From Epithemia pelagica (taxonomy: Eukaryota; Protista; Bacillariophyta), in NCBI GenBank assembly GCA_946965045.2, contig OX337242.1, positions 2,108,001 to 2,172,000 of the forward strand: 64,000 nucleotides of DNA, given 5' to 3'. Each line of letters begins with the position of its first letter. Positions within the stretch are counted from its first letter, which is position 1. The notes below the pieces were generated by a model. That model made no database searches. It was given only the letters and a program-made list of their open reading frames with translations, and was not told where the DNA came from. This document shows, piece after piece, positions 21,333-46,976 of the stretch. The position numbers and the translations under genes were made by a program.

Positions 21333-21353
21333 CCCTGGGACACCCGCTACTTT
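21333..21353 (+). mobile_element. Left terminal inverted repeat of the Transib/RAG-like element (C[C]CTGGGACACCCGCTACTTT)
   Basis: 20/21 match to the reverse complement of 31365-31385 (CACTGGGACACCCGCTACTTT). Confidence 0.85.
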
Positions 21354-21560
21354 CACATTCCGAGCGTTGCGTGTGTACGAGTGGTCTCACATAGGAGTTG
21401 CTCTTTAGTACGAGTAGCCTTTAAGTAGCACGTATCCCCCTCGAAAACTGAGCTCCTACGCTCAATCCCAGCAATTCACCAACCTCATAGCCATATTGAA
21501 AACAAAACAAGAAGACCATGGCGGCAGTTTGATCAACCTTTACACAATCATACCTCTGTC

Positions 21561-22016
21561 ATGCCTCCTCCTGCTACCCGCCAGTGTGCTGTTACGAGTT
21601 TCCCGACAGAAATTGGTCTATTCCTTGTCTCAGAGAGCAACCTCTTTCCATCCGTCCACTCTCATTTTGTTTCTATTTCTGTTCGAGCAATTCACTGCTC
21701 TGCCCATGTAAATCAAGACGATCGATCAATGGAAAGTAAAATGAAAGTGTCATTTTGGTCTGCAAATTCAGACCAACCAGTCCACGAAGCCATTGTTTCT
21801 GTTCCACTTGAATGGTCTCCAAGAATCTTTCTGGCAGCAATACGATTGACCGTCACCCAACGAAACAACGTTTGCCTGTATAAAGTGACCGACACTCCAC
21901 CAGGCTACTGCCGGATCAATGAGGTCCATTGGCTGTATGAGAACATTACAGCAACAACCAGGAGTATTTTGGAAGAGCAACATGCTTTTGTCTTTATTTT
22001 TGGTGGTGACTCGTAA
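21561..22016 (+). CDS. Small ORF inside the transposon, convergent with the transposase; possible ubiquitin-like fold ending in GG-DS
   Basis: ATG starts at 21561 and 21729; alternating beta/alpha pattern; stop lies 65 bp from the transposase stop. The fold call is inference. Confidence 0.45.
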   Translation: MPPPATRQCAVTSFPTEIGLFLVSESNLFPSVHSHFVSISVRAIHCSAHVNQDDRSMESKMKVSFWSANSDQPVHEAIVSVPLEWSPRIFLAAIRLTVTQRNNVCLYKVTDTPPGYCRINEVHWLYENITATTRSILEEQHAFVFIFGGDS

Positions 22017-22081
22017 TCAACACACAAGTACAAAGCAAAAACAAGCAGCAATTAATGATGGTTTATTAGTATCTTTCATGA

Positions 22082-25000
22082 CTATCTGGTTTTTATTGTA
22101 TCAATTTGGATTGATTTTAAGCAAGGAAAAGGGTCAGTTCGGAGAGGTAAAGAGAGCAGATCATTGCGATCATCGTCTCGTTTCAATTTCTTTTGCCGAC
22201 TATTCTCATCCCTCCGCATATCCTCCTTTCTATTCTGACGCTTTCTTTCTTGTACCTTTGCCACTTGGGCTCTCACTTGCGGAAGCTTTGAAATGGTTTC
22301 ATCTACAATGTGGGAGAGGCTTGCTGACTGATGATTGAGAGATTTTGTCCGTGCCTCAGCTTGCAAACCAGTCTGATGAACTCTCTCGCCTTGCTCTTCT
22401 GTCAAGTCTCCCACTCCTTTGTAGAATCTAACAGAAGCAAGCAGATGATCCTCCACAAAATGAAACTTTGGTGTGATACTCAAACCAAGAGCTCGCCACA
22501 TATATGAGGATTGTTTAATTTGTTTTGCGAGCCTCTCGTAGTCGAGGCTGGTTGGGTGGTATCGCTTTATGGAACACAATGAAAAGACAGCATCAAGGTG
22601 TCCAAGTAACCTTTCATAGCCATCCAATACTGTCTTGATTGTATCTTGAGAAGCAACGACATCGCTATCATCCATACCAATCCAAACCAAGAGACAGTCA
22701 TTCCATAATGACGCAAAGATTTCGCGGCGGTTCCGAAGAAGAGCTCGCAAAGAATTTCCCTGTAAGTCTCCCCCATGGTATATAGCTGGCTTTATGCCAT
22801 GCTTCTTCAATACATCTTCAATCCACGCTCATAGTGGCTGACCAGTGGCTTTGCTGTTGGCTGGTAGTTGTGCCTCTTTCTCCCACTGCTGTTTTATGAG
22901 CTTCAGTTTCTCTTTTGCTGCTTTCAGCTTGTCCTTTGCTTGTTGCTGCGCTGGTCCAGTAAGTTGGGTACTGCGATTGGCTTCGGCAATACTTGCCACA
23001 GTGTCTTGTTGTTGATACGTTGCTGTTTCAAGAGCAACGTACTGCTCAGTGTACTGTTCCGCAGCACTTTGCAATTGCGAGATGAGACTGTCATGCACCT
23101 TATTGCCCAATCCAAGGAGTAAATGGAGAATTGGTGGAGCAGTGTCCTTTACCTCTACACACAACAATGGCTGCTGATCAGTTTTGAAGCCTCGTACATT
23201 GTTTGCACTATTCAAATATGCCGCAGAGCTGCTTTTCAACACATTTCGATGTGCCGCCATGCTTTGAAGTGTCCACATACGACCATGTCTCCTGTGTACT
23301 CGTGACCATTCTGCTTTGCTCAGGTCACAGTACCAACACCAGCAAGAAGAATAGCCTTCACGACCATAGTTTGTCATGATCTGAGAGCCATCTCCACTGC
23401 TGATGCATTGGATTGGAACGTGTCTAAGCTCTGGATCCCATTCGTTAGATACGGTTTCGTCTCCCAATGTAACTAACACAGCCCTTTCACGACCCTCTGT
23501 TGCTCTTCTCTGCCACACACTAATGGACCCAGCTTCAATTATCTTGGCAATTGCTTGATTTATGTGTGGCATAAAGGTTTTTGACAGGATTTCATAAGTG
23601 TCTTTCCGACACTTCGCCCGGGCAACAAGGAAGGGTTCAGATCTTTTGCAATGCTTGTCTCCGTCTATCCAACGAGTAATGATGCAGAGACAACCTCGTG
23701 AAGCCCCTTGGCCATGATCACAGGACCATAATAAGTCAATGGAGTGAAATTGTGGTATTTTGGATGACTGCTTCACAACAGAAATGACGTAGGTCTTCAA
23801 TGTTTCGAATATATCACGGCAGAACCATTCCACGGAACGACTTCTCGATAAAGAGAGAGACGATGTTGTCGGTGGAGGAATTTGCGATCGAGACACAAGC
23901 AATTCCTTCCTAATTTTGTCTCTTCCTGCCATGACCGTTTGTCCAAAGTGGACGCGAAGATGGCTGGCAATGATCTCTGCTTGCATTGTATTCAATCCAG
24001 CTTTGCAAAGCATTGCTGTTGTTTCAATGACAGACATCGGCTTGGCAACAACAATGTTTTTGCAAGAGCTTGCAGCACTGAGCATTGCTTCGGGGTATCT
24101 GTTTCTGACAAAAGCCAAGAGAATAGCAGCAGCGTGTTCCATTGATGACAGACCATCGGCCTCTACTTCGTCTTCATTTTCTTCTTCATCAATGTGATCC
24201 TGCTCTCGTTCAATGGAACAAGAGTCAGGAACAAACTGCTTCAAAATATTGTCAAGGAATGGATGATCTCGTTCATTCTCTCGTAAACACTTCATATTGC
24301 GTGACTTTGGTATCCGACAGAGACGGATGCGAGTAGAGTTCCCCATCTGAACGTTGAAGAGATCATACTTTCTCTTTGACTGTTCAAGAGTAACTAGGTT
24401 GCGAAGTACTGTCGAGACTGACCAGGTATTAGATGGGTCAATGCCAAACTTTTGGAGCGCATGTAAGGATTTGGCCTCAGCAAGAGGCGACATCATTGTG
24501 GATGAGACTGCCATTGCAGAGCGTTCTTCTCTTTTCTTTCGAAGGTCTTGGCCAAGTTTTATTATGATGTCCGCTGCATCCTTGTCAAAACTTTCAGGTT
24601 TTCTCCACCATGAGCGACTTGCAAGCTGTTCCCTTTTGAATATCTTGGGAAGAAGAAACTGATTGATTGTTCGGAATATCATTTCGTGCTCCTCCATTTT
24701 GTGTTGGTATTCTATTGTTGCTGAATCATCCATACCAGGATTGTCTGGAGAAAAACAAACTTCAGGCAATGGAGCTGCTGAGGAAAGAGTACTGCGAGAC
24801 AGGGATGGCTGCATTTCTTGCTTAATGGCCTGTTTGAGTTGATCAACAAATGGTTTCGGGCTGATTCGTCTTGGTGGCTGCGATAGGTGACAAGGCTCTT
24901 CATACAGTGGGAGGGCTCTTTGCCCAATTCCCAGTTTAATCCAGATACACTTTTGGTCCCTTTTTTTGGTTTCCACCTTGTCTTGGTACTCGGAATAGGT

Positions 25001-25099
25001 GAACAGGCGACTTGTATACGACAGTTCAGCCATGTTCAACAGTCGATCAAATCCATCAGCTGCATTCCGTACCAAATTTTGGCCTTTCTTCTTTTTCAT
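22082..25099 (-). pseudogene. RAG1/Transib-superfamily DDE transposase with one in-frame TGA (22829-22831)
   Basis: ORFs 22829..25240 and 22082..22810 are in the same frame (QPL*AWIEDVLKKHGI). Motifs in RAG1-core order: WSCDHGQG (D1), KDTYEIL, SGDGSQ...CWCWYCD (D2 plus CxxC), PPILHLLLGLGN, YHGGDLQGN, TPKFHFVEDH, EEQGERVH (E). Confidence 0.85.
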
Positions 25100-26009
25100 T
25101 TTAGTCACTTCAAATACAACAGAAGCCACACGGAATGTCAAGGCTTGGATGGGTGAAAGAAACTTGAGTCTTAAGACTCGAGCCCCAAGCGTGCTCCCAA
25201 CAGGATACCGTCCAGAGTTAGATACGAGCCCATATTGCAATGCTGATTGGCAATTGTTTTTTCAACAGCAGATTGGTGTTCTCAGATGGTTGGTCGAGCT
25301 GGGAAGGATCGACATTACTGCGGAGGTTTCAATGTTGGCGGCTTTCTTAGCAGGAGCAAGAGAAGGTCATGTTCATGCGATGCTTCATGTCTTTGCTTAT
25401 CTGAACTTGCATGACCGTTCGAGACTGGTCTTAGATCCTTCATATATTCAGCACGGAGAAGAATTGACAGCTGATTGGGCAGGTTTTTATCCAGACGCCA
25501 AAGAGGACATTCCAGCAGACGCTCCAGAACCATTGGGCAATCCAGTCCAGATGACGGTCTTCGTCGACTCTGATCATGCTGGAGATTTGATCACCAGACG
25601 CTCAAGAACTGGAGTTTTAATCTATCTGAATCGAGCTCCTGTAACTTGGTACAGTAAGAAACAGACCAGCGTCGAAACATCGACATTTGGGTCAGAATTT
25701 ATGGCTCTCAAAGTGGGCATTGAAATGGTAAAAGGACTTCGATGCAAGTTAAGGATGATGGGCGTACCTCTGGATGGACATGCGCATATACAGGTTGATA
25801 ACATGTCCGTGGTACTGAATACGTCGGTCCCTGAATCAACACTGAAAAAGAAGTCAAATTCAATCGCATATCATTTTGTTCGTGAGAATGTTGCATCGGG
25901 CATGTGTCGTGTTGCTTTTGAACTGTCGAAGACTAACCTTGCTGACATTCTTACAAAGATTCAAACAGGTACAGAGAGAACACGGTTAGCATCAATGATC
26001 CTATATTAG
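25100..26009 (+). mobile_element. Ty1/copia (CoDi-like) pol 3' fragment: end of RT plus RNase H
   Basis: EATRNV...GYRPELDTSP...QQQIGVLRWLVELGRIDI; VFVDSDHAGDLITRRSRTG; WYSKKQTSVETSTFGSEF; VDNMSV; SIAYHFVRE; NLADILTK. Confidence 0.93.
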
Positions 26010-26266: not shown

Positions 26267-26304
26267 TTGCAAATTGCAACGAGACACGAGACACGAGACC
26301 CCCG

Positions 26305-26316
26305 TCCAGTGTCCAG
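26305..26316 (+). mobile_element. Probable excision footprint TCCAG-TG-TCCAG (5-bp target-site duplication)
   Basis: In units 2-5 the same TCCAG directly follows the TIR end (...CCCAGTG|TCCAG). Confidence 0.65.
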
Positions 26317-26657
26317 TAGATGAAAAGAGAGACAGTTCGTCCACGACAAACGACAACCGCCTCCACCTCCAGCGGACTGCTCTTCAGCGCCACCTCCTGT
26401 AATGCGTCATGCGTTACATTGACAACGTCCACGGAGTCTAAAACAAGAGAGACAATTTGTCCGCAACAACCAACTGCTCTTCGGCGCCACCTCCTGTACT
26501 GCTTACGTTGACTAATAACACAAAACTACTGTCACCAGACATCGTTCCAAACACATGTATCACGAATCACGACCTCAAGACCAAGGCGGGGATTGAATCG
26601 GAGATTTGAGATTGCATTCCCACTTTGTACATCATAACGAGAGGACAGGCTATCATC

Positions 26658-27367
26658 ATGGCAACCATCACCAGCAGCCAAACAGTGTGCTCCACAGATT
26701 CCACAATTCGGACCTCCAACGTCCAAAACCCAAAGCCTTACTTCATCACGGTAGGTAATGGAGCTGGTATATCCCTTGACCAACGGATCCCCAGCGCATA
26801 CTGACATGTATTTCTTTCTGTGTTTGTTTGCAGCTCTCAAAACGATCCCTAATGTCGCGCTTTCATTCATCTGATCAAGAAATTAAGGAGACCTTTCTCC
26901 GTAACATTGACGTCGAGCTCGACGATAACCAGCAGATGTATCTGCTGTTTGCAATCACTGCGATCGTAGAAAAACCCAGTCTCTCTATCGAGGAGCTTAT
27001 GGACCTGAGTCCTCTTGCCGTCGTTTTTAACCAAACGGGATTGGCGAATCGCTATCTTCGTGATCTTGTTCACCATGTTCGTCGATTTTCCGTCGCTGGG
27101 CCGGTTACCGAGATCCCAGATGAGAGCAACAGCGCTGGCGTCTCGTCTTTGACGAATCCTGGTTTTGGGAGTTCTGCCGATGGTCAGGGGGAAACAAACA
27201 ACAGCAACGAAACAGTTGCGGACGGTCAAGCAGTCCCGGCTGCCCACAGCAACTGGTCTGTGGACGCCGTGGCAGGTTCTGCTGCCCCTTCTCAAATCAC
27301 CGACTTAACAGCCGAGACGGAAGACACGTCCATAAGTGAAGGGGGTGATCAAAAAGACGAAATGTAA
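26658..27367 (+). CDS. Orphan two-exon gene, copy C1 (208 aa; exons 26658-26750 and 26834-27367)
   Basis: MATITSSQ...PYFIT|LSKRSLMSRF; 83-nt canonical intron. Confidence 0.75.
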
Positions 27368-28323
27368 AGCAGCAGAAAGCACTTTAGAGACTTCAAGTGG
27401 TGAAGGGGCAGATCAACAAGAAGAGGAAAGCATCATTCGAACAACAAAGTCTCCTGAACTAACATCAAGGAAAAAGTGTCATGACCTGGAATTTGTAACA
27501 GAGTCTCGTGTAAGGCAAACCGAGTGAAACTACCAATATTCCTGCGAATCTTTGCCACTCGTAGACAAGAACACCAGATAGACTGTATTTCTTTGATGGA
27601 TCTCGGTGACGAGGTCAGGTCCGTGTTCCCATCCAACCATAAAACATGTGAATCCGCATAAACAAAAGACAATCATGTCGACAACGAGTTCTTTCATGTT
27701 TGTTTGTTTTAGCTACCCGTTAGTGATGGTATTCATCTTGTTGTATTACTTTAAGTTAAATCAATTGATCAATGTGGCAGTGCGAGTATATCACTGAATG
27801 GATGACGGTTCATCAGAACCACCACGGTACCAAATTCGAGGTCGAACAATGGAAATGGAGTATAATTCGAAGAAAGAAAGTCCAAGTTTGCGACTTGTCC
27901 CTTGTCGTCAATAAGTGAACAGGTCACATTTTGTATGTATTTTGTATGGCACTCTCGCCATCAGTAAGATGGTCTTTTTCATTGTCATGGAGAGATTTTG
28001 TGGTTAGAGCAATGTCACATGTTACATTTGCCGATAAAAGCCAATACAAGCACCTTTACTGAATCGAAACATCTTGACATGAGGACCATCGTGTCTTCAA
28101 TGTTGTGATTTTCACAATCTTGAGGATTCCAACAACGGATTTATGAAGTCTATCCAATCGGATCATTCCTCAATGGTTCACCTAACAGGATCCCATTCCA
28201 GTACCACTATCTACCGAAGGTTTCCTTACCAATCAAACGGGGGCTCGTTTCGAAACCATCCTTGGTTTAAATTTTCCCATGACACTCTCGCCATCAGTAA
28301 GATGGTCTTGTTCATTGTCATGG

Positions 28324-30267
28324 CTAGAACGATCCAAATTTCTTGACGGGTCCTCCAGGAGGAGATTCCACATCCTTGTTGTGGTTGTCTTGCTGGTCTT
28401 CCACGGCCGATGCAATGGCTGCGACGTCCTTTTGGACTTGCACTCGAGCACCGTCATTGGTGGGTGTCCAATCCCGTAGCCTATTGGACCAATGTGGTTG
28501 TGGTTGTGGTTGTCCTCCATGTTTCGACGCCCGTCGGCTCACGGTAAAGTTGATAACCTTACCGACAATGGCCGCCGTCATGGCCCGTGTCATGGCACCT
28601 CTCAAATCTGGTGATTTCGCCAACAGGGCTTGCATATCTTCGTGTTTCCAACGCATCACGACCGAATCTTGGACAGCGACAATGGTATACAAGGCTTCTT
28701 TGGAGGACATGGCCGAACTTCGTTTCAAGGCATTGGTACGACGACGACTCATGCGACGTGGAATGGGGACCAAGGGAGTCGCTGGATCCGGTTGCGACGA
28801 CGATGAGGATGGCATTGGCTGTTGCTGTTGTTGCTGCTGGTACGTGGCAGCTACGGCGGCGGGTGTCGTACTGGCAGCCGTCACAGGAGAAGGACCAAGA
28901 GACAGCGGGTTCGTCGAGTCTGGTTGCCTCTCAGTCGACGGTAGGGTGGTACTCGCAGCACTGATTGAGCTGGAAGCAGTACCATTGCTTCCACTACTAC
29001 TGGTCGCCGTAGATGAAGTAGTTTGTTGTTGCTGTTGTTGTTGTTGTTGAGTATTCCAATAGGCTTGCAAAAAGGCCATTTCTCCAATCCACGCCCCCGA
29101 CGTCCAACTCAATCGATCTTCCGTTGCTGCGGCATCGTCTTCGACACCGGCCGCTGCATTAAAGGAAGCCGCCGTCAGGCGTCGTCCCAAGGCTTGTGCT
29201 CGTGTTTCGCCCTGGGTGACCAAACACACATGGGTCATGGCTTGTCGTTCTTGCACGACAATGTCTCCCTTTTTCACGTGCACAATTTCGGCTTGTTGAT
29301 AAATATGTTCAAATTGTTTGGGTGTGACACCGTGAGGCATAAAAAATTTGGAATAAACTTGTTCTTGGGCTTTCGTCATGTTGACGGTTCCTTCCCGTTC
29401 GGCAATGACTTGATAGATTTTCCAACTATTGACGGCGGCAAAAATAAAACTCCAGGCCATGGGTGCGACTCGACGGGGCGACAGCGAATTGTGATAAATC
29501 AAGGCGGCCAAGGAACCGGTCGCATTCAAGGCTCGCAATTCAATCACATCGGACCGCGTGAATCCCACCAAGGCACAAATGGAACCAATATTAAGGACCA
29601 AGACGGCCCAATTGTCCAACCACCATTCATACAAGCGAGCGGCAAAATCCACCAAGTAGGCCCACCACCGCACGGGAGGAGAGGCGGTGGTGGTGGTGGT
29701 TGTGGCCGTGGTACTGCTGGCCAACGTGGTGGTGGTGGTGGCCGGAGTGGCATGGCTCATCAAGGGTGCGGTCGCTTCCACAGTCGAAGCACTGGTACTA
29801 CTGACAGCCGCTGTTGTGGGGGCACTGCTGGTGGAGCCAGTGGCCGATGTGGCACTGGGAGCGGCAGTCGTCGTCGCAGGAGGTGTCGATGCGCTGGGGG
29901 ACGCCGCGGAAGGAGACGTTGGGGTGCTGGTCGTTGTGGTTGTCGTGGTGGTTGCGGCGGCGGCGGGTGGTGTCGTCGTTGAAGACGGTGGCGGCAATTT
30001 GGTAAAGGTTTTGGGTTTGGCCAAGTGAGTTTGAGGCAATTTGGGCAAATTGGGAAAGAGTCGCGGTGGTCGGGGTTCCGGGGCGGCCGGCACCCGAATG
30101 CGATAAAATTGACCCTTGTAGACACCCTTGATGGTAAAGGGACCACCCGTGTGACTTGCGGCCGTCGCCTTGGCCAATTCTTCGTCCCAAAAGGCTCGCA
30201 CCTTGGAGTGACCGGACTGCAATCGATGACGACGCAAGAGTCGTTCCAAAAAGCGGACAAACGACAA
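28324..30267 (-). CDS. Popeye-family membrane protein with cNMP-binding-like domain, copy 1 (native start lost; first in-frame ATG at 29760)
   Basis: TM region NIGSICALVGFTRSDVIELRAL...WSFIFAAVNSWKI; YSKFFMPHGVTPKQF; KKGDIVVQE; WIGEMAFL; YTIVA..MRW. Confidence 0.75.
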   Translation of the reverse strand: MSFVRFLERLLRRHRLQSGHSKVRAFWDEELAKATAASHTGGPFTIKGVYKGQFYRIRVPAAPEPRPPRLFPNLPKLPQTHLAKPKTFTKLPPPSSTTTPPAAAATTTTTTTTSTPTSPSAASPSASTPPATTTAAPSATSATGSTSSAPTTAAVSSTSASTVEATAPLMSHATPATTTTTLASSTTATTTTTTASPPVRWWAYLVDFAARLYEWWLDNWAVLVLNIGSICALVGFTRSDVIELRALNATGSLAALIYHNSLSPRRVAPMAWSFIFAAVNSWKIYQVIAEREGTVNMTKAQEQVYSKFFMPHGVTPKQFEHIYQQAEIVHVKKGDIVVQERQAMTHVCLVTQGETRAQALGRRLTAASFNAAAGVEDDAAATEDRLSWTSGAWIGEMAFLQAYWNTQQQQQQQQQTTSSTATSSSGSNGTASSSISAASTTLPSTERQPDSTNPLSLGPSPVTAASTTPAAVAATYQQQQQQQPMPSSSSSQPDPATPLVPIPRRMSRRRTNALKRSSAMSSKEALYTIVAVQDSVVMRWKHEDMQALLAKSPDLRGAMTRAMTAAIVGKVINFTVSRRASKHGGQPQPQPHWSNRLRDWTPTNDGARVQVQKDVAAIASAVEDQQDNHNKDVESPPGGPVKKFGSF

Positions 30268-31385
30268 TCAAACCTTGATTTCCTTGATTTCCTTCTCTGC
30301 TCAGGAGATGAGTGTCTCCATTCCATCTTGCCTTTCAAACGCTTGTTGACTAACATCTGAGACAGTATCCAACAGAGTATGTTTGCCGGTAACAACACAA
30401 ACTTTGGGACATGACGTGGACAGTTTCAGAGTTCCCTTGGCTGGTGTGGTTTCCAGCATGCACCAGTTATGCGTCAAACCATAGAGAAGCTCTACTCCAG
30501 CACGTATGTGCGGTGTTACCAATAAGCGATCGTTGACGTCCATTTATAATGGACATGGGCTGAACTACTTGGTAGATTGCGAACGAGAATACCGCCGTAC
30601 TTGTTGCGTTTGGTTTGATTGTCGTTTTGTCCGCTTGTCGTTTTGTCCGCTTGTCGTCTTGTCGTTTTGTCCGCTTGTCGTTTTGTCCGCTTGTCGTTTT
30701 GTCCGCTTGTCGTTTTGTCCGCTTGTCGTCTTGTCGGCTTGTCGTCTTGTCTTCTTGTCCGCTTGTCCGCTTGTCGTCTTGTCCGCTTCATCTTGTCCGC
30801 TTGTCGTCTTGTCCGCTTCATTTTGTGAGGTTTGCGAGAACCATCCCGTGGGAGCACCGTGACAAAATAGAAGCACGACTCGTACTTCTGCAGTAATGTT
30901 GTACTAGAGAGGTACTGGATGTACTGTTAAATAGACCAAATAATGGGAATTGGGCTGTTCAAGAATATTATAGCCTATTGTGGCGAGCAGCTTCACGTAC
31001 GAGTACGAGTAGTCCTTGCCGTTGAGCTTATTTACCGATGGCTCACAAGTCACAAGACTGAGAAGTTACGTAGTGTACCTAACATTACTCGTCGGGCTTA
31101 GCTAATGAGTGATAAGTAGGACATTACAAGACAACAATTTCATCTTGTGTGTGTCATGAGGCTTAATACCGGGTGCACCGTTTTTATTGCCCCGGTCTTT
31201 TGAACAAGAGACAATCGCCAAAACGACAAGGACTAGAGCTGTTTAGCTAGTTCTAAGCTAAAATGCTGCCTTGTCTGCTAGCATAGGGCGCGTGAGGTCA
31301 TAGCCGACATAGTTTCGCGTGTTCCTGAATAGGAAGACTACTATGAAAGCGGAAAACCGCTACCAAAGTAGCGGGTGTCCCAGTG
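30256..31385 (-). mobile_element. Transposon right-end fragment (1130 bp) ending in the inverted TIR 31365-31385
   Basis: AAAGTAGCGGGTGTCCCAGTG is the reverse complement of the left TIR; the segment is absent at the native locus beyond 50575. Confidence 0.8.
30612..30820 (+). repeat. Minisatellite of TTGTCGTTTTGTCCGC / TTGTCGTCTTGTCCGC 16-mers (repeated in units 1-4; one fewer copy in unit 3)
   Basis: Directly visible. Confidence 0.9.
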
Positions 31386-31731
31386 TCCAGTAGATGAAAA
31401 GAGAGACAGTTCGTCCACGACAAACGACAACCGCCTCCACCTCCAGCGGACTGCTCTTCAGCGCCACCTCCTGTAATGCGTCATGCGTTACATTGACAAC
31501 GTCCACGGAGTCTAAAACAAGAGAGACAATTTGTCCGCAACAACCAACTGCTCTTCGGCGCCACCTCCTGTACTGCTTACATTGACTAATAACACAAAAC
31601 TACTGTCACCAGACATCGTTCCAAACACATGTATCACGAATCACGACCTCAAGACCAAGGCGGGGATTGAATCAAAGATTTGAGATTGCATTCCCACTTT
31701 GTACATCATAACGAGAGGACAGGCTATCATC

Positions 31732-32441
31732 ATGGCAACCATCACCAGCAGCCAAACAGTGTGCTCCACAGATTCCACAATTCGGACCTCCAACGTCCAA
31801 AACCCAAAGCCTTACTTCATCACGGTAGGTAATGGAGCTGGTATATCCCTTGACCAACGGATCCCCAGCGCATACTGACATGTATTTCTTTCTGTGTTTG
31901 TTTGCAGCTCTCAAAACGATCCCTAATGTCGCGCTTTCATTCATCTGATCAAGAAATTAAGGAGACCTTTCTCCGTAACATTGACGTCGAGCTCGACGAT
32001 AACCAGCAGATGTATCTGCTGTTTGCAATCACTGCGATCGTAGAAAAACCCAGTCTCTCTATCGAGGAGCTTATGGACCTGAGTCCTCTTGCCGTCGTTT
32101 TTAACCAAACGGGATTGGCGAATCGCTATCTTCGTGATCTTGTTCACCATGTTCGTCGATTTTCCGTCGCTGGGCCGGTTACCGAGATCCCAGATGAGAG
32201 CAACAGCGCTGGCGTCTCGTCTTTGACGAATCCTGGTTTTGGGAGTTCTGCCGATGGTCAGGGGGAAACAAACAACAGCAACGAAACAGTTGCGGACGGT
32301 CAAGCAGTCCCGGCTGCCCACAGCAACTGGTCTGTGGACGCCGTGGCAGGTTCTGCTGCCCCTTCTCAAATCACCGGCTTAACAGCCGAGACGGAAGACA
32401 CGTCCATAAGTGAAGGGGGTGATCAAAAAGACGAAATGTAA
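31732..32441 (+). CDS. Orphan two-exon gene, copy C2
   Basis: Same structure as C1; one D>G change near the C-terminus. Confidence 0.75.
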
Positions 32442-33398
32442 AGCAGCAGAAAGCACTTTAGAGACTTCAAGTGGTGAAGGGGCAGATCAACAAGAAGAGG
32501 AAAGCATCATTCGAACAACAAAGTCTCCTGAACTAACATCAAGGAAAAAGTGTCATGACCTGGAATTTGTAACAGAGTCTCGTGTAAGGCAAACCGAGTG
32601 AAACTACCAATATTCCTGCGAATCTTTGCCACTCGTAGACAAGAACACTAGATAGACTGTATTTCTTTGATGGATCTCGGTGACGAGGTCAGGTCCGTGT
32701 TCCCATCCAACCATAAAACATGTGAATCCGCATAAACAAAAGACAATCATGTCGACAACGAGTTCATTCATGGTTTGTTTGTTTTAGCTACCCGTTAGTG
32801 ATGGTATTCATCTTGTTGTATTACTATAAGTTAAATCAATTGATCAATGTGGCAGTGCGAGTATATCACTGAATGGATGACGGTTCATCAGAACCACCAC
32901 GGTACCAAATCCGAGGTCGAACAATGGAAATGGAGTATAATTCGAAGAAAGAAAGTCCAAGATTGCGACTTGTCCCATGTCGTCAATAAGTGAACAGGTC
33001 ACATTTTGTATGTATTTTGTATGGCACTCTCGCCATCAGTAAGATGGTCTTTTTCATAGTCATGGAGAGATTTTGTGGTTAGAGCAATGTCACATGTTAC
33101 ATTTGCCGATAAAAGCCAATACAAGCACCTTTACTGAATCGAAACATCTTGACATGAGGACCATCGTGTCTTCAATGTTGTGATTTTCACAATCTTGAGG
33201 ATTCCAACAACGGATATATGAAGTCTATCCAATCGGATCATTCCTCAATGGTTCACCTAACAGGATCCCATTCCAGTACCACTATCTACCGAAGGTTTCC
33301 TTACCAATCAAACGGGGGCTCGTTTCGAAACCATCCTTGGTTTAAATTTTCCCATGACACTCTCGCCATCAGTAAGATGGTCTTGTTCATTGTCATGG

Positions 33399-35345
33399 CT
33401 AGAACGATCCAAATTTCTTGACGGGTCCTCCAGGAGGAGATTCCACATCCTTGTTGTGGTTGTCTTGCTGGTCTTCCACGGCCGATGCAATGGCTGCGAC
33501 GTCCTTTTGGACTTGCACTCGAGCACCGTCATTGGTGGGTGTCCAATCCCGTAGCCTATTGGACCAATGTGGTTGTGGTTGTGGTTGTCCTCCATGTTTC
33601 GACGCCCGTCGGCTCACGGTAAAGTTGATAACCTTACCGACAATGGCCGCCGTCATGGCCCGTGTCATGGCACCTCTCAAATCTGGTGATTTCGCCAACA
33701 GGGCTTGCATATCTTCGTGTTTCCAACGCATCACGACCGAATCTTGGACAGCGACAATGGTATACAAGGCTTCTTTGGAGGACATGGCCGAACTTCGTTT
33801 CAAGGCATTGGTACGACGACGACTCATGCGACGTGGAATGGGGACCAAGGGAGTCGCTGGATCCGGTTGCGACGACGATGAGGATGGAAATGGCTGTTGC
33901 TGTTGTTGCTGCTGGTACGTGGCAGCTACGGCGGCGGGTGTCGTACTGGCAGCCGTCACAGGAGAAGGACCAAGAGACAGCGGGTTCGTCGAGTCTGGTT
34001 GCCTCTCAGTCGACGGTAGGGTGGTACTCGCAGCACTGATTGAGCTGGAAGCAGTACCATTGCTTCCACTACTACTGGTCGCCGTGGATGAAGTAGTTTG
34101 TTGTTGCTGTTGTTGTTGTTGTTGTTGAGTATTCCAATAGGCTTGCAAAAAGGCCATTTCTCCAATCCACGCCCCCGACGTCCAACTCAATCGATCTTCC
34201 GTTGCTGCGGCATCGTCTTCGACACCGGCCGCTGCATTAAAGGAAGCCGCCGTCAGGCGTCGTCCCAAGGCTTGTGCTCGTGTTTCGCCCTGGGTGACCA
34301 AACACACATGGGTCATGGCTTGTCGTTCTTGCACGACAATGTCTCCCTTTTTCACGTGCACAATTTCGGCTTGTTGATAAATATGTTCAAATTGTTTGGG
34401 TGTGACACCGTGAGGCATAAAAAATTTGGAATAAACTTGTTCTTGGGCTTGCGTCATGTTGACGGTTCCTTCCCGTTCGGCAATGACTTGATAGATTTTC
34501 CAACTATTGACGGCGGCAAAAATAAAACTCCAGGCCATGGGTGCGACTCGACGGGGCGACAGCGAATTGTGATAAATCAAGGCGGCCAAGGAACCGGTCG
34601 CATTCAAGGCTCGCAATTCAATCACATCGGACCGCGTGAATCCCACCAAGGCACAAATGGAACCAATATTAAGGACCAAGACGGCCCAATTGTCCAACCA
34701 CCATTCATACAAGCGAGCGGCAAAATCCACCAAGTAGGCCCACCACCGCACGGGAGGAGAGGCGGTGGTGGTGGTGGTTGTGGCCGTGGTACTGCTGGCC
34801 AACGTGGTGGTGGTGGTGGCCGGAGTGGCATGGCTCATCAAGGGTGCGGTCGCTTCCACAGTCGAAGCACTGGTACTACTGACAGCCGCTGTTGTGGGGG
34901 CACTGCTGGTGGAGCCAGTGGCCGATGTGGCACTGGGAGCGGCAGTCGTCGTCGCAGGAGGTGTCGATGCGCTGGGGGACGCCGCGGAAGGAGACGTTGG
35001 GGTGCTGGTCGTTGTGGTTGTCGTGGTGGTTGCGGCGGCGGCGGGTGGTGTCGTCGTTGAAGACGGTGGCGGCAATTTGGTAAAGGTTTTGGGTTTGGCC
35101 AAGTGAGTTTGAGGCAATTTGGGCAAATTGGGAAAGAGTCGCGGTGGTCGGGGTTCCGGGGCGGCCGGCACCCGAATGCGATAAAATTGACCCTTGTAGA
35201 CACCCTTGATGGTAAAGGGACCACCCGTGTGACTTGCGGCCGTCGCCTTGGCCAATTCTTCGTCCCAAAAGGCTCGCACCTTGGAGTGACCGGACTGCAA
35301 TCGATGACGACGCAAGAGTCGTTCCAAAAAGCGGACAAACGACAA
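33399..35345 (-). CDS. Popeye/cNMP-like membrane protein, copy 2 (native start lost)
   Basis: As copy 1; poly-Q is one residue longer. Confidence 0.75.
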   Translation of the reverse strand: MSFVRFLERLLRRHRLQSGHSKVRAFWDEELAKATAASHTGGPFTIKGVYKGQFYRIRVPAAPEPRPPRLFPNLPKLPQTHLAKPKTFTKLPPPSSTTTPPAAAATTTTTTTTSTPTSPSAASPSASTPPATTTAAPSATSATGSTSSAPTTAAVSSTSASTVEATAPLMSHATPATTTTTLASSTTATTTTTTASPPVRWWAYLVDFAARLYEWWLDNWAVLVLNIGSICALVGFTRSDVIELRALNATGSLAALIYHNSLSPRRVAPMAWSFIFAAVNSWKIYQVIAEREGTVNMTQAQEQVYSKFFMPHGVTPKQFEHIYQQAEIVHVKKGDIVVQERQAMTHVCLVTQGETRAQALGRRLTAASFNAAAGVEDDAAATEDRLSWTSGAWIGEMAFLQAYWNTQQQQQQQQQQTTSSTATSSSGSNGTASSSISAASTTLPSTERQPDSTNPLSLGPSPVTAASTTPAAVAATYQQQQQQQPFPSSSSSQPDPATPLVPIPRRMSRRRTNALKRSSAMSSKEALYTIVAVQDSVVMRWKHEDMQALLAKSPDLRGAMTRAMTAAIVGKVINFTVSRRASKHGGQPQPQPHWSNRLRDWTPTNDGARVQVQKDVAAIASAVEDQQDNHNKDVESPPGGPVKKFGSF

Positions 35346-36463
35346 TCAAACCTTGATTTCCTTGATTTCCTTCTCTGCTCAGGAGATGAGTGTCTCCATT
35401 CCATCTTGCCTTTCAAACGCTTGTTGACTAACATCTGAGACAGTATCCAACAGAGTATGTTTGCCGGTAACAACACAAACTTTGGGACATGACGTGGACA
35501 GTTTCAGAGTTCCCTTGGCTGGTGTGGTTTCCAGCATGCACCAGTTATGCGTCAAACCATAGAGAAGCTCTACTCCAGCACGTATGTGCGGTGTTACCAA
35601 TAAGCGATCGTTGACGTCCATTTATAATGGACATGGGCTGAACTACTTGGTAGATTGCGAACGAGAATACCGCCGTACTTGTTGCGTTTGGTTTGATTGT
35701 CGTTTTGTCCGCTTGTCGTTTTGTCCGCTTGTCGTCTTGTCGTTTTGTCCGCTTGTCGTTTTGTCCGCTTGTCGTTTTGTCCGCTTGTCGTTTTGTCCGC
35801 TTGTCGTCTTGTCGGCTTGTCGTCTTGTCTTCTTGTCCGCTTGTCCGCTTGTCGTCTTGTCCGCTTCATCTTGTCCGCTTGTCGTCTTGTCCGCTTCATT
35901 TTGTGAGGTTTGCGAGAACCATCCCGTGGGAGCACCGTGACAAAATAGAAGCACGACTCGTACTTCTGCAGTAATGTTGTACTAGAGAGGTACTGGATGT
36001 ACTGTTAAATAGACCAAATAATGGGAATTGGGCTGTTCAAGAATATTATAGCCTATTGTGGCGAGCAGCTTCACGTACGAGTACGAGTAGTCCTTGCCGT
36101 TGAGCTTATTTACCGATGGCTCACAAGTCACAAGACTGAGAAGTTACGTAGTGTACCTAACATTACTCGTCGGGCTTAGCTAATGAGTGATAAGTAGGAC
36201 ATTACAAGACAACAATTTCATCTTGTGTGTGTCATGAGGCTTAATACCGGGTGCACCGTTTTTATTGCCCCGGTCTTTTGAACAAGAGACAATCGCCAAA
36301 ACGACAAGGACTAGAGCTGTTTAGCTAGTTCTAAGCTAAAATGCTGCCTTGTCTGCTAGCATAGGGCGCGTGAGGTCATAGCCGACATAGTTTCGCGTGT
36401 TCCTGAATAGGAAGACTACTATGAAAGCGGAAAACCGCTACCAAAGTAGCGGGTGTCCCAGTG
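35334..36463 (-). mobile_element. Transposon right-end fragment, TIR at 36443-36463
   Basis: Matches 30256-31385. Confidence 0.8.
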
Positions 36464-36815
36464 TCCAGTACTCCTAGATGAAAAGAGAGACAGTTCGTCC
36501 ACGACAAACGACAACCGCCTCCACCTCCAGCGGACTGCTCTTCAGCGCCACCTCCTGTAATGCGTAATGCGTTACATTGACAACGTCCACGGAGTCTAAA
36601 ACAAGAGAGACAATTTGTCCGCAACAACCAACTGCTCTTCGGCGCCACCTCCTGTACTGCTTACATTGACTAATAACACAAAACTACTGTCACCAGACAT
36701 CGTTCCAAACACATGTATCACGAATCACGACCTCAAGACCAAGGCGGGGATTGAATCGGAGATTTGAGATTGCATTCCCACTTTGTACATCATAACGAGA
36801 GGACAGGCTATCATC

Positions 36816-37525
36816 ATGGCAACCATCACCAGCAGCCAAACAGTGTGCTCCACAGATTCCACAATTCGGACCTCCAACGTCCAAAACCCAAAGCCTTACT
36901 TCATCACGGTAGGTAATGGAGCTGGTATATCCCTTGACCAACGGATCCCCAGCGCATACTGACATGTATTTCTTTCTGTGTTTGTTTGCAGCTCTCAAAA
37001 CGATCCCTAATGTCGCGCTTTCATTCATCTGATCAAGAAATTAAGGAGACCTTTCTCCGTAACATTGACGTCGAGCTCGACGATAACCAGCAGATGTATC
37101 TGCTGTTTGCAATCACTGCGATCGTAGAAAAACCCAGTCTCTCTATCGAGGAGCTTATGGACCTGAGTCCTCTTGCCGTCGTTTTTAACCAAACGGGATT
37201 GGCGAATCGCTATCTTCGTGATCTTGTTCACCATGTTCGTCGATTTTCCGTCGCTGGGCCGGTTACCGAGATCCCAGATGAGAGCAACAGCGCTGGCGTC
37301 TCGTCTTTGACGAATCCTGGTTTTGGGAGTTCTGCCGATGGTCAGGGGGAAACAAACAACAGCAACGAAACAGTTGCGGACGGTCAAGCAGTCCCGGCTG
37401 CCCACAGCAACTGGTCTGTGGACGCCGTGGCAGGTTCTGCTGCCCCTTCTCAAATCACCGGCTTAACAGCCGAGACGGAAGACACGTCCATAAGTGAAGG
37501 GGGTGATCAAAAAGACGAAATGTAA
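36816..37525 (+). CDS. Orphan two-exon gene, copy C3
   Basis: Intact; same exons and intron. Confidence 0.75.
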
Positions 37526-38476
37526 AGCAGCAGAAAGCACTTTAGAGACTTCAAGTGGTGAAGGGGCAGATCAACAAGAAGAGGAAAGCATCATTCGAAC
37601 AACAAAGTCTCCTGAACTAACATCTAGGAAAAAGTGTCATGACCTGGAATTTGTAACAGAGTCTCGTGTAAGGCAAACCGAGTGAAACTACCAATATTCC
37701 TGCGAATCTTTGCCACTCGTAGACAAGAACACTAGATAGACTGTATTTCTTTGATGGATCTCGGTGACGAGGTCAGGTCCGTGTTCCCATCCAACCATAA
37801 AACATGTGAATCCGCATAAACAAAAGACAATCATGTCGACAACGAGTTCATTCATGGTTTGTTTGTTTTAGCTACCCGTTAGTGATGGTATTCATCTTGT
37901 TGTATTACTATAAGTTAAATCAATTGATCAATGTGGCAGTGCGAGTATATCACTGAATGGATGACGGTTCATCAGAACCACCACGGTACCAAATCCGAGG
38001 TCGAACAATGGAAATGGAGTATAATTCGAAGAAAGAAAGTCCAAGATTGCGACTTGTCCCATGTCGTCAATAAGTGAACAGGTCACATTTTGTATGTATT
38101 TTGTATGGCACTCTCGCCATCAGTAAGATGGTCTTTTTCATAGTCATGGAGAGATTTTGTGGTTAGAGCAATGTCACATGTTACATTTGCCGATAAAAGC
38201 CAATACAAGCACCTTTACTGAATCGAAACATCTTGACATGAGGACCATCGTGTCTTCAATGTTGTGATTTTCACAATCTTGAGGATTCCAACAACGGATA
38301 TATGAAGTCTATCCAATCGGATCATTCCTCAATGGTTCACCTAACAGGATCCCATTCCAGTACCACTATCTACCGAAGGTTTCCTTACCAATCAAACGGG
38401 GGCTCGTTTCGAAACCATCCTTGGTTTAAATTTTCCCATGACACTCTCGCCATCAGTAAGATGGTCTTGTTCATTG

Positions 38477-40441
38477 TCATGGATAGAACGATCCAAATTT
38501 CTTGACGGGTCCTCCAGGAGGAGATTCCACATCCTTGTTGTGGTTGTCTTGCTGGTCTTCCACGGCCGATGCAATGGCTGCGACGTCCTTTTGGACTTGC
38601 ACTCGAGCACCGTCATTGGTGGGTGTCCAATCCCGTAGCCAATTGGACCAATGTGGTTGTGGTTGTGGTTGTCCTCCATGTTTCGACGCCCGTCGGCTCA
38701 CGGTAAAGTTGATAACCTTACCGACAATGGCCGCCGTCATGGCCCGCGTCATGGCCCGTGTCATGGCACCCCTCAAATCTGGTGATTTCGCCAACAGGGC
38801 TTGCATATCTTCGTGTTTCCAACGCATCACGACCGAATCTTGGACAGCGACAATGGTATACAAGGCTTCTTTGGAGGACATGGCCGAACTTCGTTTCAAG
38901 GCATTGGTACGACGACGACTCATGCGACGTGGAATGGGGACCAAGGGAGTCGCTGGATCCGGTTGCGACGACAATGAGGATGGCAATGGCTGTTGCTGTT
39001 GTTGCTGCTGGTACGTGGCAGCTACGGCGGCGGGTGTCGTACTGGCAGCCGTCACAGGAGAAGGACCAAGAGACAGCGGGTTCGTCGAGTCTGGTTGCCT
39101 CTCAGTCGACGGTAGGGTGGTACTCGCAGCACTGATTGAGCTGGAAGCAGTACCATTGCTTCCACTACTACTGGTCGCCGTGGATGAAGTAGTTTGTTGT
39201 TGCTGTTGTTATTGTTGTTGTTGAGTATTCCAATAGGCTTGCAAAAAGGCCATTTCTCCAATCCACGCCCCCGACGTCCAACTCAATCGATCTTCCGTTG
39301 CTGCGGCATCGTCTTCGACACCGGCCGCTGCATTAAAGGAAGCCGCCGTCAGGCGTCGTCCCAAGGCTTGTGCTCGTGTTTCGCCCTGGGTGACCAAACA
39401 CACATGGGTCATGGCTTGTCGTTCTTGCACGACAATGTCTCCCTTTTTCACGTGCACAATTTCGGCTTGTTGATAAATATGTTCAAATTGTTTGGGTGTG
39501 ACACCGTGAGGCATAAAAAATTTGGAATAAACTTGTTCTTGGGCTTGCGTCATGTTGACGGTTCCTTCCCGTTCGGCAATGACTTGATAGATTTTCCAAC
39601 TATTGACGGCGGCAAAAATAAAACTCCAGGCCATGGGTGCGACTCGACGGGGCGACAGCGAATTGTGATAAATCAAGGCGGCCAAGGAACCGGTCGCATT
39701 CAAGGCTCGCAATTCAATCACATCGGACCGCGTGAATCCCACCAAGGCACAAATGGAACCAATATTAAGGACCAAGACGGCCCAATTGTCCAACCACCAT
39801 TCATACAAGCGAGCGGCAAAATCCACCAAGTAGGCCCACCACCGCACGGGAGGAGAGGCGGTGGTGGTGGTGGTTGTGGCCGTGGTACTGCTGGCCAACG
39901 TGGTGGTGGTGGTGGCCGGAGTGGCATGGCTCATCAAGGGTGCGGTCGCTTCCACAGTCGAAGCACTGGTACTACTGACAGCCGCTGTTGTGGGGGCACT
40001 GCTGGTGGAGCCAGTGGCCGATGTGGCACTGGGAGCGGCAGTCGTCGTCGCAGGAGGTGTCGATGCGCTGGGGGACGCCGCGGAAGGAGACGTTGGGGTG
40101 CTGGTCGTTGTGGTTGTCGTGGTGGTTGCGGCGGCGGCGGGTGGTGTCGTCGTTGAAGACGGTGGCGGCAATTTGGTAAAGGTTTTGGGTTTGGCCAAGT
40201 GAGTTTGAGGCAATTTGGGCAAATTGGGAAAGAGTCGCGGTGGTCGGGGTTCCGGGGCGGCCGGCACCCGAATGCGATAAAATTGACCCTTGTAGACACC
40301 CTTGATGGTAAAGGGACCACCCGTGTGACTTGCGGCCGTCGCCTTGGCCAATTCTTCGTCCCAAAAGGCTCGCACCTTGGAGTGACCGGACTGCAATCGA
40401 TGACGACGCAAGAGTCGTTCCAAAAAGCGGACAAACGACAA
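38477..40441 (-). pseudogene. Popeye/cNMP-like copy 3, inactivated
   Basis: CAA>TAA in the poly-Q (39209-39211), 12-bp duplication (RAMT twice) and a TAG>TAT stop loss. Confidence 0.85.
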
Positions 40442-41543
40442 TCAAACCTTGATTTCCTTGATTTCCTTCTCTGCTCAGGAGATGAGTGTCTCCATTCCAT
40501 CTTGCCTTTCAAACGCTTGTTGACTAACATCTGAGACAGTATCCAACAGAGTATGTTTGCCGGTAACAACACAAACTTTGGGACATGACGTGGACAGTTT
40601 CAGAGTTCCCTTGGCTGGTGTGGTTTCCAGCATGCACCAGTTATGCGTCAAACCATAGAGAAGCTCTACTCCAGCACGTATGTGCGGTGTTACCAATAAG
40701 CGATCGTTGACGTCCATTTATAATGGACATGGGCTGAACTACTTGGTAGATTGCGAACGAGAATACCGCCGTACTTGTTGCGTTTGGTTTGATTGTCGTT
40801 TTGTCCGCTTGTCGTTTTGTCCGCTTGTCGTCTTGTCGTTTTGTCCGCTTGTCGTTTTGTCCGCTTGTCGTTTTGTCCGCTTGTCGTCTTGTCGGCTTGT
40901 CGTCTTGTCTTCTTGTCCGCTTGTCCGCTTGTCGTCTTGTCCGCTTCATCTTGTCCGCTTGTCGTCTTGTCCGCTTCATTTTGTGAGGTTTGCGAGAACC
41001 ATCCCGTGGGAGCACCGTGACAAAATAGAAGCACGACTCGTACTTCTGCAGTAATGTTGTACTAGAGAGGTACTGGATGTACTGTTAAATAGACCAAATA
41101 ATGGGAATTGGGCTGTTCAAGAATATTATAGCCTATTGTGGCGAGCAGCTTCACGTACGAGTACGAGTAGTCCTTGCCGTTGAGCTTATTTACCGATGGC
41201 TCACAAGTCACAAGACTGAGAAGTTACGTAGTGTACCTAACATTACTCGTCGGGCTTAGCTAATGAGTGATAAGTAGGACATTACAAGACAACAATTTCA
41301 TCTTGTGTGTGTCATGAGGCTTAATACCGGGTGCACCGTTTTTATTGCCCCGGTCTTTTGAACAAGAGACAATCGCCAAAACGACAAGGACTAGAGCTGT
41401 TTAGCTAGTTCTAAGCTAAAATGCTGCCTTGTCTGCTAGCATAGGGCGCGTGAGGTCATAGCCGACATAGTTTCGCGTGTTCCTGAATAGGAAGACTACT
41501 ATGAAAGCGGAAAACCGCTACCAAAGTAGCGGGTGTCCCAGTG
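40430..41543 (-). mobile_element. Transposon right-end fragment, TIR at 41523-41543
   Basis: As above, minus one 16-mer. Confidence 0.8.
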
Positions 41544-41895
41544 TCCAGTACTCCTAGATGAAAAGAGAGACAGTTCGTCCACGACAAACGACAACCGCCT
41601 CCACCTCCAGCGGACTGCTCTTCAGCGCCACCTCCTGTAATGCGTAATGCGTTACATTGACAACGTCCACGGAGTCTAAAACAAGAGAGACAATTTGTCC
41701 GCAACAACCAACTGCTCTTCGGCGCCACCTCCTGTACTGCTTACATTGACTAATAACACAAAACTACTGTCACCAGACATCGTTCCAAACACATGTATCA
41801 CGAATCACGACCTCAAGACCAAGGCGGGGATTGAATCGGAGATTTGAGATTGCATTCCCACTTTGTACATCATAACGAGAGGACAGGCTATCATC

Positions 41896-42605
41896 ATGGC
41901 AACCATCACCAGCAGCCAAACAGTGTGCTCCACAGATTCCACAATTCGGACCTCCAACGTCCAAAACCCAAAGCCTTACTTCATCACGGTAGGTAATGGA
42001 GCTGGTATATCCCTTGACCAACGGATCCCCAGCGCATACTGACATGTATTTCTTTCTGTGTTTGTTTGCAGCTCTCAAAACGATCCCTAATGTCGCGCTT
42101 TCATTCATCTGATCAAGAAATTAAGGAGACCTTTCTCCGTAACATTGACGTCGAGCTCGACGATAACCAGCAGATGTATCTGCTGTTTGCAATCACTGCG
42201 ATCGTAGAAAAACCCAGTCTCTCTATCGAGGAGCTTATGGACCTGAGTCCTCTTGCCGTCGTTTTTAACCAAACGGGATTGGCGAATCGCTATCTTCGTG
42301 ATCTTGTTCACCATGTTCGTCGATTTTCCGTCGCTGGGCCGGTTACCGAGATCCCAGATGAGAGCAACAGCGCTGGCGTCTCGTCTTTGACGAATCCTGG
42401 TTTTGGGAGTTCTGCCGATGGTCAGGGGGAAACAAACAACAGCAACGAAACAGTTGCGGACGGTCAAGCAGTCCCGGCTGCCCACAGCAACTGGTCTGTG
42501 GACGCCGTGGCAGGTTCTGCTGCCCCTTCTCAAATCACCGGCTTAACAGCCGAGACGGAAGACACGTCCATAAGTGAAGGGGGTGATCAAAAAGACGAAA
42601 TGTAA
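41896..42605 (+). CDS. Orphan two-exon gene, copy C4
   Basis: Intact. Confidence 0.75.
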
Positions 42606-43562
42606 AGCAGCAGAAAGCACTTTAGAGACTTCAAGTGGTGAAGGGGCAGATCAACAAGAAGAGGAAAGCATCATTCGAACAACAAAGTCTCCTGAACTAA
42701 CATCTAGGAAAAAGTGTCATGACCTGGAATTTGTAACAGAGTCTCGTGTAAGGCAAACCGAGTGAAACTACCAATATTCCTGCGAATCTTTGCCACTCGT
42801 AGACAAGAACACTAGATAGACTGTATTTCTTTGATGGATCTCGGTGACGAGGTCAGGTCCGTGTTCCCATCCAACCATAAAACATGTGAATCCGCATAAA
42901 CAAAAGACAATCATGTCGACAACGAGTTCATTCATGGTTTGTTTGTTTTAGCTACCCGTTAGTGATGGTATTCATCTTGTTGTATTACTATAAGTTAAAT
43001 CAATTGATCAATGTGGCAGTGCGAGTATATCACTGAATGGATGACGGTTCATCAGAACCACCACGGTACCAAATCCGAGGTCGAACAATGGAAATGGAGT
43101 ATAATTCGAAGAAAGAAAGTCCAAGATTGCGACTTGTCCCATGTCGTCAATAAGTGAACAGGTCACATTTTGTATGTATTTTGTATGGCACTCTCGCCAT
43201 CAGTAAGATGGTCTTTTTCATAGTCATGGAGAGATTTTGTGGTTAGAGCAATGTCACATGTTACATTTGCCGATAAAAGCCAATACAAGCACCTTTACTG
43301 AATCGAAACATCTTGACATGAGGACCATCGTGTCTTCAATGTTGTGAATTTCACAATCTTGAGGATTCCAACAACGGATATATGAAGTCTATCCAATCGG
43401 ATCATTCCTCAATGGTTCACCTAACAGGATCCCATTCCAGTACCACTATCTACCGAAGGTTTCCTTACCAATCAAACGGGGGCTCGTTTCGAAACCATCC
43501 TTGGTTTAAATTTTCCCATGACACTCTCGCCATCAGTAAGATGGTCTTGTTCATTGTCATGG

Positions 43563-46624: not shown

Positions 46625-46976
46625 TCCAGTACTCCTAGATGAAAAGAGAGACAGTTCGTCCACGACAAACGACAACCGCCTCCACCTCCAGCGGACTGCT
46701 CTTCAGCGCCACCTCCTGTAATGCGTAATGCGTTACATTGACAACGTCCACGGAGTCTAAAACAAGAGAGACAATTTGTCCGCAACAACCAACTGCTCTT
46801 CGGCGCCACCTCCTGTACTGCTTACATTGACTAATAACACAAAACTACTGTCACCAGACATCGTTCCAAACACATGTATCACGAATCACGACCTCAAGAC
46901 CAAGGCGGGGATTGAATCGGAGATTTGAGATTGCATTCCCACTTTGTACATCATAACGAGAGGACAGGCTATCATC

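Follow-up and report, generated by a model that had tools for sequence, protein, structure and literature searches.

The known systems closest to the element treated here are EnSpm/CACTA, Chapaev and the Transib/RAG1/ProtoRAG group. The DUF1280 proteins have been equated with the transposases of Chapaev elements and were found to cluster with RAG1 (Majorek et al., 2014, PMC3985635), and Chapaev has been included in a broadly drawn Transib superfamily (Kapitonov and Koonin, 2015, PMC4411706). The clade uniting CACTA, Mirage, Chapaev and Transib (CMCT clade) is recognized by CA..TG termini, by target-site duplications (TSDs) of 2-5 bp and by two transposase motifs, C(2)C and H(3-4)H, and elements with CAC..GTG termini and a 3-bp TSD are classed as EnSpm (Kojima, 2025, PMC12730594). 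The present analysis concerns a 64,000-bp stretch of the genome of the diatom Epithemia pelagica (assembly GCA_946965045.2, contig OX337242.1, positions 2,108,001 to 2,172,000; hereafter the window), in which positions 21354..25119 (minus strand; delimited by blastn against two intact copies) are very probably the decayed remains of a two-gene cut-and-paste transposon of 4.23 kb that was active recently and that comes from a diatom lineage of the CMCT clade that has no name and that is not Transib/RAG. The element is EnSpm/CACTA-like by its ends and TSD, has Chapaev/DUF1280 as its nearest curated family by sequence, and resembles RAG1/Transib by fold. It shows all the features by which the CMCT clade is defined (both motifs, the termini and a TSD within the stated range), and because RAG1-like motifs and CA..TG ends are common to that whole clade they do not single out Transib/RAG, the lineage to which a preliminary description of the locus had assigned it. 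Full-text literature searches returned no RAG1-like, Transib or Chapaev element described in diatoms.

Two intact copies were identified on different contigs of one ENA assembly, L001 through a protein search (protein P0001) and L006 through a search with the second gene of the element, open reading frame 2 (ORF2). P0001 is 1063 amino acids (aa) long, is 99% identical to the protein of the window copy and has an arginine at the position of a premature stop in the latter. Positions 9691-13919 of L001 match positions 11023-6794 of L006 at 99.3% over 4230 bp (elements of 4229 and 4230 bp) and the flanks of the two are unrelated; window positions 25119..21354 match L001 10155..13919 at 98.96% (blastn) and L006 at 99.1%. 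Because the three copies are 99.0-99.3% identical, the element has, judging by this identity, been active recently. It begins with CACGTTCCGATGG and ends with CGCTCGGAATGTG, and the terminal inverted repeats (TIRs) of the intact copies are imperfect, 13 nt long and matching at 10 of 13 positions (CACGTTCCGATGG / CACATTCCGAGCG). L001 is flanked on both sides by TGT and L006 by AAG, which gives a 3-bp TSD. A 4-bp duplication is excluded at L006 (CAAG vs AAGA, or GAAG, do not match), the 5-nt flanks are unequal at both sites (AGTGT vs TGTGG in L001, CCAAG vs AAGAT in L006), and 3 bp is the only length that fits both, the chance of both matching being about 2e-4. The length could be settled because a second independent insertion, L006, was available; the 5-bp TSD of the preliminary description is thus contradicted by the intact copies, as is the 4-bp TSD of Chapaev. 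At a more distant locus, L004, which encodes a 33%-identical transposase, the TIRs are CACGTATGTTTCGAGATG / CACATATGGTTCGTGATG and the flanks ACA and ACT.

The insertion in L001 interrupts the reverse transcriptase (RT) frame of a Ty1/copia element between KARFVAGGHTTEAPATLTYASV and VSRESVRIALTLAALNDL (in the protein, between ..TYASV and VSRESVRIAL..). The right part of the interrupted frame matches RVT_2 (E 1e-12), and taking out the element together with one TGT rejoins the Copia RT frame in frame. A Copia-B copy in L001 was rejected as an empty-site reference, as it is deleted at the insertion spot; the RVT_2 profile coordinates stop short of the junction. Nested retroelements occupy about 1764-9301 and 9302-15378 of L001: a minus-strand Copia with a 1807-aa pol and identical repeats of at least 201 bp (1764-1964 and 9101-9301) lies inside or beside a plus-strand Copia, the latter being the one split by the DNA transposon. 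Generic inverted-repeat scans of L001, two further loci (L002 and L003) and the window gave no convincing TIR, and the search for subterminal repeats gave no obvious arrays, with TTCCG only mildly enriched across the first 160 bp. Within these 160 bp (L001 9691-9850) TTCCG occurs three times and the terminal 9-mer CACGTTCCG is found again at element position 152; both repeats may be putative subterminal sites bound by the transposase.

The same copies bear on the reading that the gene was domesticated from a transposase and serves the host instead of a mobile element. A long open reading frame, the two intact 1063-aa copies and the host genes adjoining L006 would agree with it, but it is hardly credible in the face of an element found three times, at unrelated loci, with identical boundaries (4.23 kb), TIRs and TSDs, and in one case inside a Copia RT gene, and of codon changes that are mostly nonsynonymous (11 to 6; 21 to 11), as in neutral decay, in addition to the truncation and stop of the window copy.

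As a copy of the transposon, the window feature spans positions 465-4229 of the intact element. Its 3' end at 21354 is a genuine element terminus with the true 3' TIR (21354..21366, CACATTCCGAGCG as read on the plus strand, the partner in intact copies being CACGTTCCGATGG), and the first 464 bp are missing, comprising the 5' TIR, a 310-bp leader and codons 1-51. These codons are genuinely protein-coding because the N-termini of distant homologs align with residues 1-51 (..HYG.xLP....S(L/I)..) and the segment is predicted to fold, with a predicted local distance difference test score (pLDDT) of 80-89. The transposase frame (22082..25119, minus strand; delimited by alignment, conservation and fold) thereby retains codons 52-1063 of 1063 and the stop. 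Read from an ATG at 25099, it stays open as one frame up to the stop codon (22082-22084), except for a TGA at 22829..22831 (minus strand; R815*) where the intact copies have CGA. The long frame with RAG1-like motifs that had been reported earlier is real, and all of the listed motifs are present in the order given (WSCDHGQG, SSGDGS...CWCWYCD, ILHLLLGLGN, DLQGN, TPKFHFVEDH, EEQGERVHQ); the right boundary at 25099 needs correction as a gene start, the methionine there being residue 59 of the intact protein and hence internal.

Besides the premature stop, the window copy has 21 codons that differ nonsynonymously from L001 and 11 that differ synonymously, a pattern that fits neutral decay. Contigs of public sequencing runs have a G at 22831, i.e., the intact CGA codon, and contigs of the same runs extend past 25119 into an L001-type 5' region. 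The window copy itself is dead, neither mobile nor able to make transposase, because it has lost the 5' end, the promoter and codons 1-51 and contains a premature stop. On the truncated side it adjoins a mid-pol Ty1/copia fragment on the plus strand (25117 to ~26303; C-terminal RT and RNase H, with downstream sequence to 26303), which is 47-56% identical at the aa level to the Copia pol of L001 (tblastx); Copia contigs in the public runs run leftward past 25117 into other sequence. Two TIR candidates near this junction were discarded: 'gACATTCCG' at 25139-25131, considered as a remnant of the 5' TIR, lies where Copia contigs run through 25117 and its bases encode ..RNV.. of the Copia pol, and the TIR-like ACATTCCG at 25131-25138 is Copia coding sequence.

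The preliminary description had also given the element a 21-bp CAC-type TIR (CACTGGGACACCCGCTACTTT). This 21-mer occurs once on the plus strand (21333-21353; 20 of 21 positions) and four times perfectly on the minus strand (31365, 36443, 41523 and 46604), which makes five matches in the window vs zero expected by chance. It starts with CAC, adjoins the element and is inverted relative to its other copies, and the fold of the transposase is that of RAG1/Transib, all of which would agree with a Transib/RAG-lineage element with 21-bp TIRs and 5-bp TSDs. The 21-mer (21333..21353, plus strand) is nevertheless flanking target DNA, because it lies exactly outside the true 3' end, the sequence shared with the intact copies starting at 21354 just inside it, and because the intact copies lack it; neither the 21-mer nor its 17-nt core was found in any fetched locus, L001 and L006 included. 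Its inverted partners, about 5080 bp apart, are each the last 21 nt of a unit in a tandem array (26304..50575, with no strand assigned; defined by unit comparison) of about 4.8 units of 5.08 kb that are 99.4% identical. In every unit there is a gene for 647 aa that matches Popeye/cNMP-binding domains (PF04831, E 1e-9; e.g., 28324-30267, minus strand), and the array is duplicated host DNA outside the transposon. A composite element bounded by inverted 21-mers (21333-31385) was accordingly rejected: in addition to the origin of the partners and the absence of the 21-mer from intact copies, its flanks (AACTT vs TCCAG) form no TSD of 5 bp or otherwise. With L001 and L006 having ends of their own and 3-bp TSDs from two independent insertions, and with no RAG1 Pfam model matched, the Transib/RAG reading is very improbable. 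Positions 26305-26316, tried as an excision footprint with a 5-bp TSD, are the left edge of the array (junction of CCCCGTCCAGTG and TCCAGTAG) and unrelated to the transposon with its 3-bp TSD.

Several repeats in the same region were recorded alongside. The array units also hold a 179-aa open reading frame and a microsatellite of 16 bp (TTGTCGTCTTGTCCGC, ~13 copies), show microhomology at their junctions (CCAGTG/TCCAGT), and end in a last unit that stops at unit position ~3950, short of the 21-mer. Older partial unit copies, 84-90% identical and in direct orientation, lie upstream of the element at 16294-16958 and 19010-20844. A very high-copy short repeat is situated at 21269-21337, with a word depth in public-run contigs ~25x that of the transposon and alternative continuations at 21256, 21294, 21301 and 21337; its portion 21294-21337 takes in the first 5 nt of the 21-mer. 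A 65-bp tandem repeat is present at 56123-56252 in two copies that are 98% identical.

The intact protein was used for the analysis of conservation and fold. Relatives of the transposase comprise 837 representative clusters at E <= 1e-3 in an exhaustive HMMER search, and in alignments of 44-60 members the residues D519 (followed by HG), D558, D628, C646, C649, H717, G834/G835, K936, H938, H943, E963 and H966 are invariant or nearly so. The pairs C646-x2-C649 and H938-x4-H943 are situated between D628 and E963. On the minus strand of the window, the codons of D519, D628 and E963 are at 23719-23717, 23392-23390 and 22387-22385, those of the presumed zinc ligands C646 / C649 at 23338-23336 / 23329-23327 and those of the presumed zinc ligands H938 / H943 at 22462-22460 / 22447-22445. 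D628 is separated from CxxC by 18-21 residues and HxxxxH from E963 by 20-25. The equivalent stretches in RAG1, which we take to be D708 to C727/C730 and H937/H942 to E962, have equal spacings.

The AlphaFold2 model built from a 60-sequence alignment has a pLDDT of 83.8, with values >90 across most of residues 380-1063, and places D519 at the end of a beta-strand, D628 after another strand and E963 within a helix. When the PDB was searched with Foldseek, all 49 matches at E <= 1e-3 were RAG1, BbRAGL or HzTransib (best 4e-13; next match E 0.1). In VIA-align, residues 411-1009 of the model match residues 460-1007 of mouse RAG1 (Z 21.8, 472 residues, root-mean-square deviation 4.0), followed by BbRAGL (Z 19.4) and HzTransib (Z 19.3); unrelated matches have a Z of ~10 or less and are confined to a coiled-coil insert (738-828). 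This insert of ~80 residues, predicted to be helical, lies between the ZnC2 and ZnH2 parts and matches coiled-coil proteins only. The predicted structure thus shows the transposase to be a DDE enzyme with a RAG1-core fold (RNase-H domain, ZnC2/ZnH2 zinc site and C-terminal helices), and the RAG1-core-like protein proposed in the preliminary description is borne out by both structure searches.

Sequence searches were less informative. The profile of the RNase-H and ZnC2 block gave BbRAGL as its best match among PDB sequences, at the CxxC...GV..PLL...H segment and with a weak E of 0.077, and that of the ZnH2 block retrieved designed helical proteins only. The profile of the whole-length family matched PDB sequences only through coiled-coil noise from the ~80-residue insert, the sole match of the family profile in a word-indexed protein search was P0001 itself, and neither the window proteins nor P0001 gave anything relevant in Pfam or among PDB sequences.

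For family placement 140 relatives were compared with Pfam, in which DUF1280 (PF06918) was the sole recurrent family (6/140 members, best E 9e-7; by member set 3/44, 3/96 and 5/54). None of the 140 matched a RAG1_* model, and none matched Transposase_21 (PF02992), even at E <= 10 for 54 cores. Language-model features and predicted shape likewise both point to DUF1280 clusters as the closest neighbours that bear a name. The AFDB cluster matches were uncharacterised proteins, RAG1 and a 'Zinc finger PHD-type domain-containing protein' that ranked second, a name also borne by a nematode DUF1280 cluster; some of the uncharacterised matches are presumably diatom proteins, judging by their accession prefixes. 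Taken together, the earlier assignment to Transib/RAG stands as regards the RAG1-core fold and falls as regards the lineage, against which the 3-bp TSD, the wrong TIR, the absence of RAG1 Pfam matches and the presence of DUF1280 matches instead all speak.

The DUF1280 matches, these neighbourhoods and the second-ranked PHD-type entry could also mean that the element is a Chapaev-superfamily member in the strict sense, falling within the clade of animal Chapaev/DUF1280 and having merely shifted its TSD length. We consider this unlikely: the TSD is 3 bp vs 4 bp, with 4 bp ruled out by L006, neither P0001 nor the window protein matches DUF1280, no Cys-rich N-terminal domain of Chapa/RING type was seen in P0001, and a second gene is present.

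Several points weigh against the placement in an unnamed CMCT lineage and the details attached to it. The placement was based on TSD and termini, on Pfam matches in 6/140 relatives and on language-model and structure neighbours, and P0001 itself matches no Pfam model. The TSD was derived from two clean sites, the flanks of L004 agreeing at just 2/3 positions. The catalytic residues were assigned from conservation, secondary-structure position and spacing, and the function of ORF2 is inferred entirely. Furthermore, the PDB matches included no solved structure of a CACTA or Chapaev transposase, and to our knowledge none exists. A structural match to RAG1/Transib only can therefore not discriminate within the clade, to the whole of which the RAG1 fold is probably common.

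The second gene, ORF2 (151 aa), is intact in the window copy (21561..22016, plus strand) and convergent, i.e., tail-to-tail, with the transposase. L004, L005 and L007 hold homologs with 25-37% identity, placed and oriented as here beside transposase homologs of ~30-33% identity, and ORF2 is 99% identical in L001 and L006; a further homolog is present in an MMETSP transcriptome record labelled Entomo.... Judged from the loci compared, ORF2 accompanies the transposase in four divergent lineages. The conserved residues include F65, W85, P82, N120 and G148, and the AlphaFold2 model (pLDDT 85.6, predicted template modelling score 0.83) is a compact alpha/beta domain. Fold searches for ORF2 against the PDB (Foldseek, best E 0.03, template modelling score <0.3), AFDB clusters and the wide VIA-align set (best Z 4.2) returned no significant match and none to Kelch, RAG2-like or BAH-like proteins. 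Pfam searches with the window ORF2 and three homologs were likewise negative, and no credible relative appeared among atlas features. Because its linkage to the transposase is conserved, we infer an accessory role of ORF2 in transposition. A stronger proposal, that in a large, mainly diatom/protist CMCT lineage without a name (837 clusters, no Pfam model) the RAG1-fold transposase is obligately paired with a small protein of new fold encoded by a convergent gene, is put forward only tentatively.

In the mechanism proposed for the intact element, the transposase would bind the CAC...GTG ends and cut the DNA by means of D519/D628/E963, a structural zinc being held by C646/C649/H938/H943, and integration would proceed with a 3-bp stagger. 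ORF2 would act as an accessory factor that is required for transposition or regulates it.

The window feature is an ordinary dead transposon copy, and belongs to a family that is of moderate interest as a new CMCT variant. Its intact siblings are recently mobile transposons of diatom-type genomes. Their enzyme has the complete architecture of the RAG1 core, and they have ends of CACTA type, make a 3-bp TSD and carry a second gene that is conserved, which makes the boundary of the 'Transib/RAG' group against the 'CACTA/Chapaev' group less sharp. They offer a non-animal comparison for the origin of features of the V(D)J recombinase, namely the zinc site, end recognition and partner dependence. 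If the pairing were indeed obligate, it would add to RAG1-RAG2 a second, independent example of an enzyme of RAG1 type that depends on a co-transposed helper, and provide an experimentally tractable outgroup for how RAG-type transposases gain accessory subunits. The locus also calls for caution, in that motifs in a RAG1-like order and ends starting with CAC occur throughout the clade and are no evidence for the RAG lineage.

Compared with the described systems, the element shares with EnSpm/CACTA (in the convention of PMC12730594) the CAC...GTG termini and the 3-bp TSD, and like classical En/Spm, which makes TnpA and TnpD, it encodes more than one protein. It differs from that superfamily in that no Transposase_21 match was obtained for the family (140 relatives), the termini read CACG/CACA followed by TTCCG instead of CACTA, and the TIRs are short and imperfect with no obvious subterminal arrays. 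ORF2 is moreover a separate convergent gene and does not arise by alternative splicing.

With Chapaev (DUF1280) the likeness lies in the sole curated family matched by the relatives and in the nearest named neighbours by features and shape. The differences are the 3-bp TSD, the second gene and the N-terminus of P0001, in which no Chapa/RING zinc domain was detected by Pfam or in the model. The host here is a diatom, whereas Chapaev has been described from animals (PMC3985635, PMC4411706).

From the Transib/RAG1/ProtoRAG group the element is set apart by its 3-bp vs 5-bp TSD, by the absence of a significant RAG1 Pfam domain in the family, and by the ~80-residue predicted helical insert between ZnC2 and ZnH2, which distinguishes this transposase from Transib and RAG1. 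Its ends, CACGTTC and CACATTC, have CAC(A) alone in common with the heptamer (CACAGTG/CACAATG) and no heptamer/nonamer-like structure, and ORF2 is a 151-aa alpha/beta protein in contrast to the Kelch-propeller RAG2 of RAG/ProtoRAG. Shared with this group (HzTransib 6PQX, mouse RAG1 4WWX, BbRAGL 6B40) are the core fold over ~470 residues (Z 19-22), the order and spacing of D, D, CxxC, H, HxxxxH and E, and the CAC ends, to which ProtoRAG adds the likeness of a tail-to-tail second gene.

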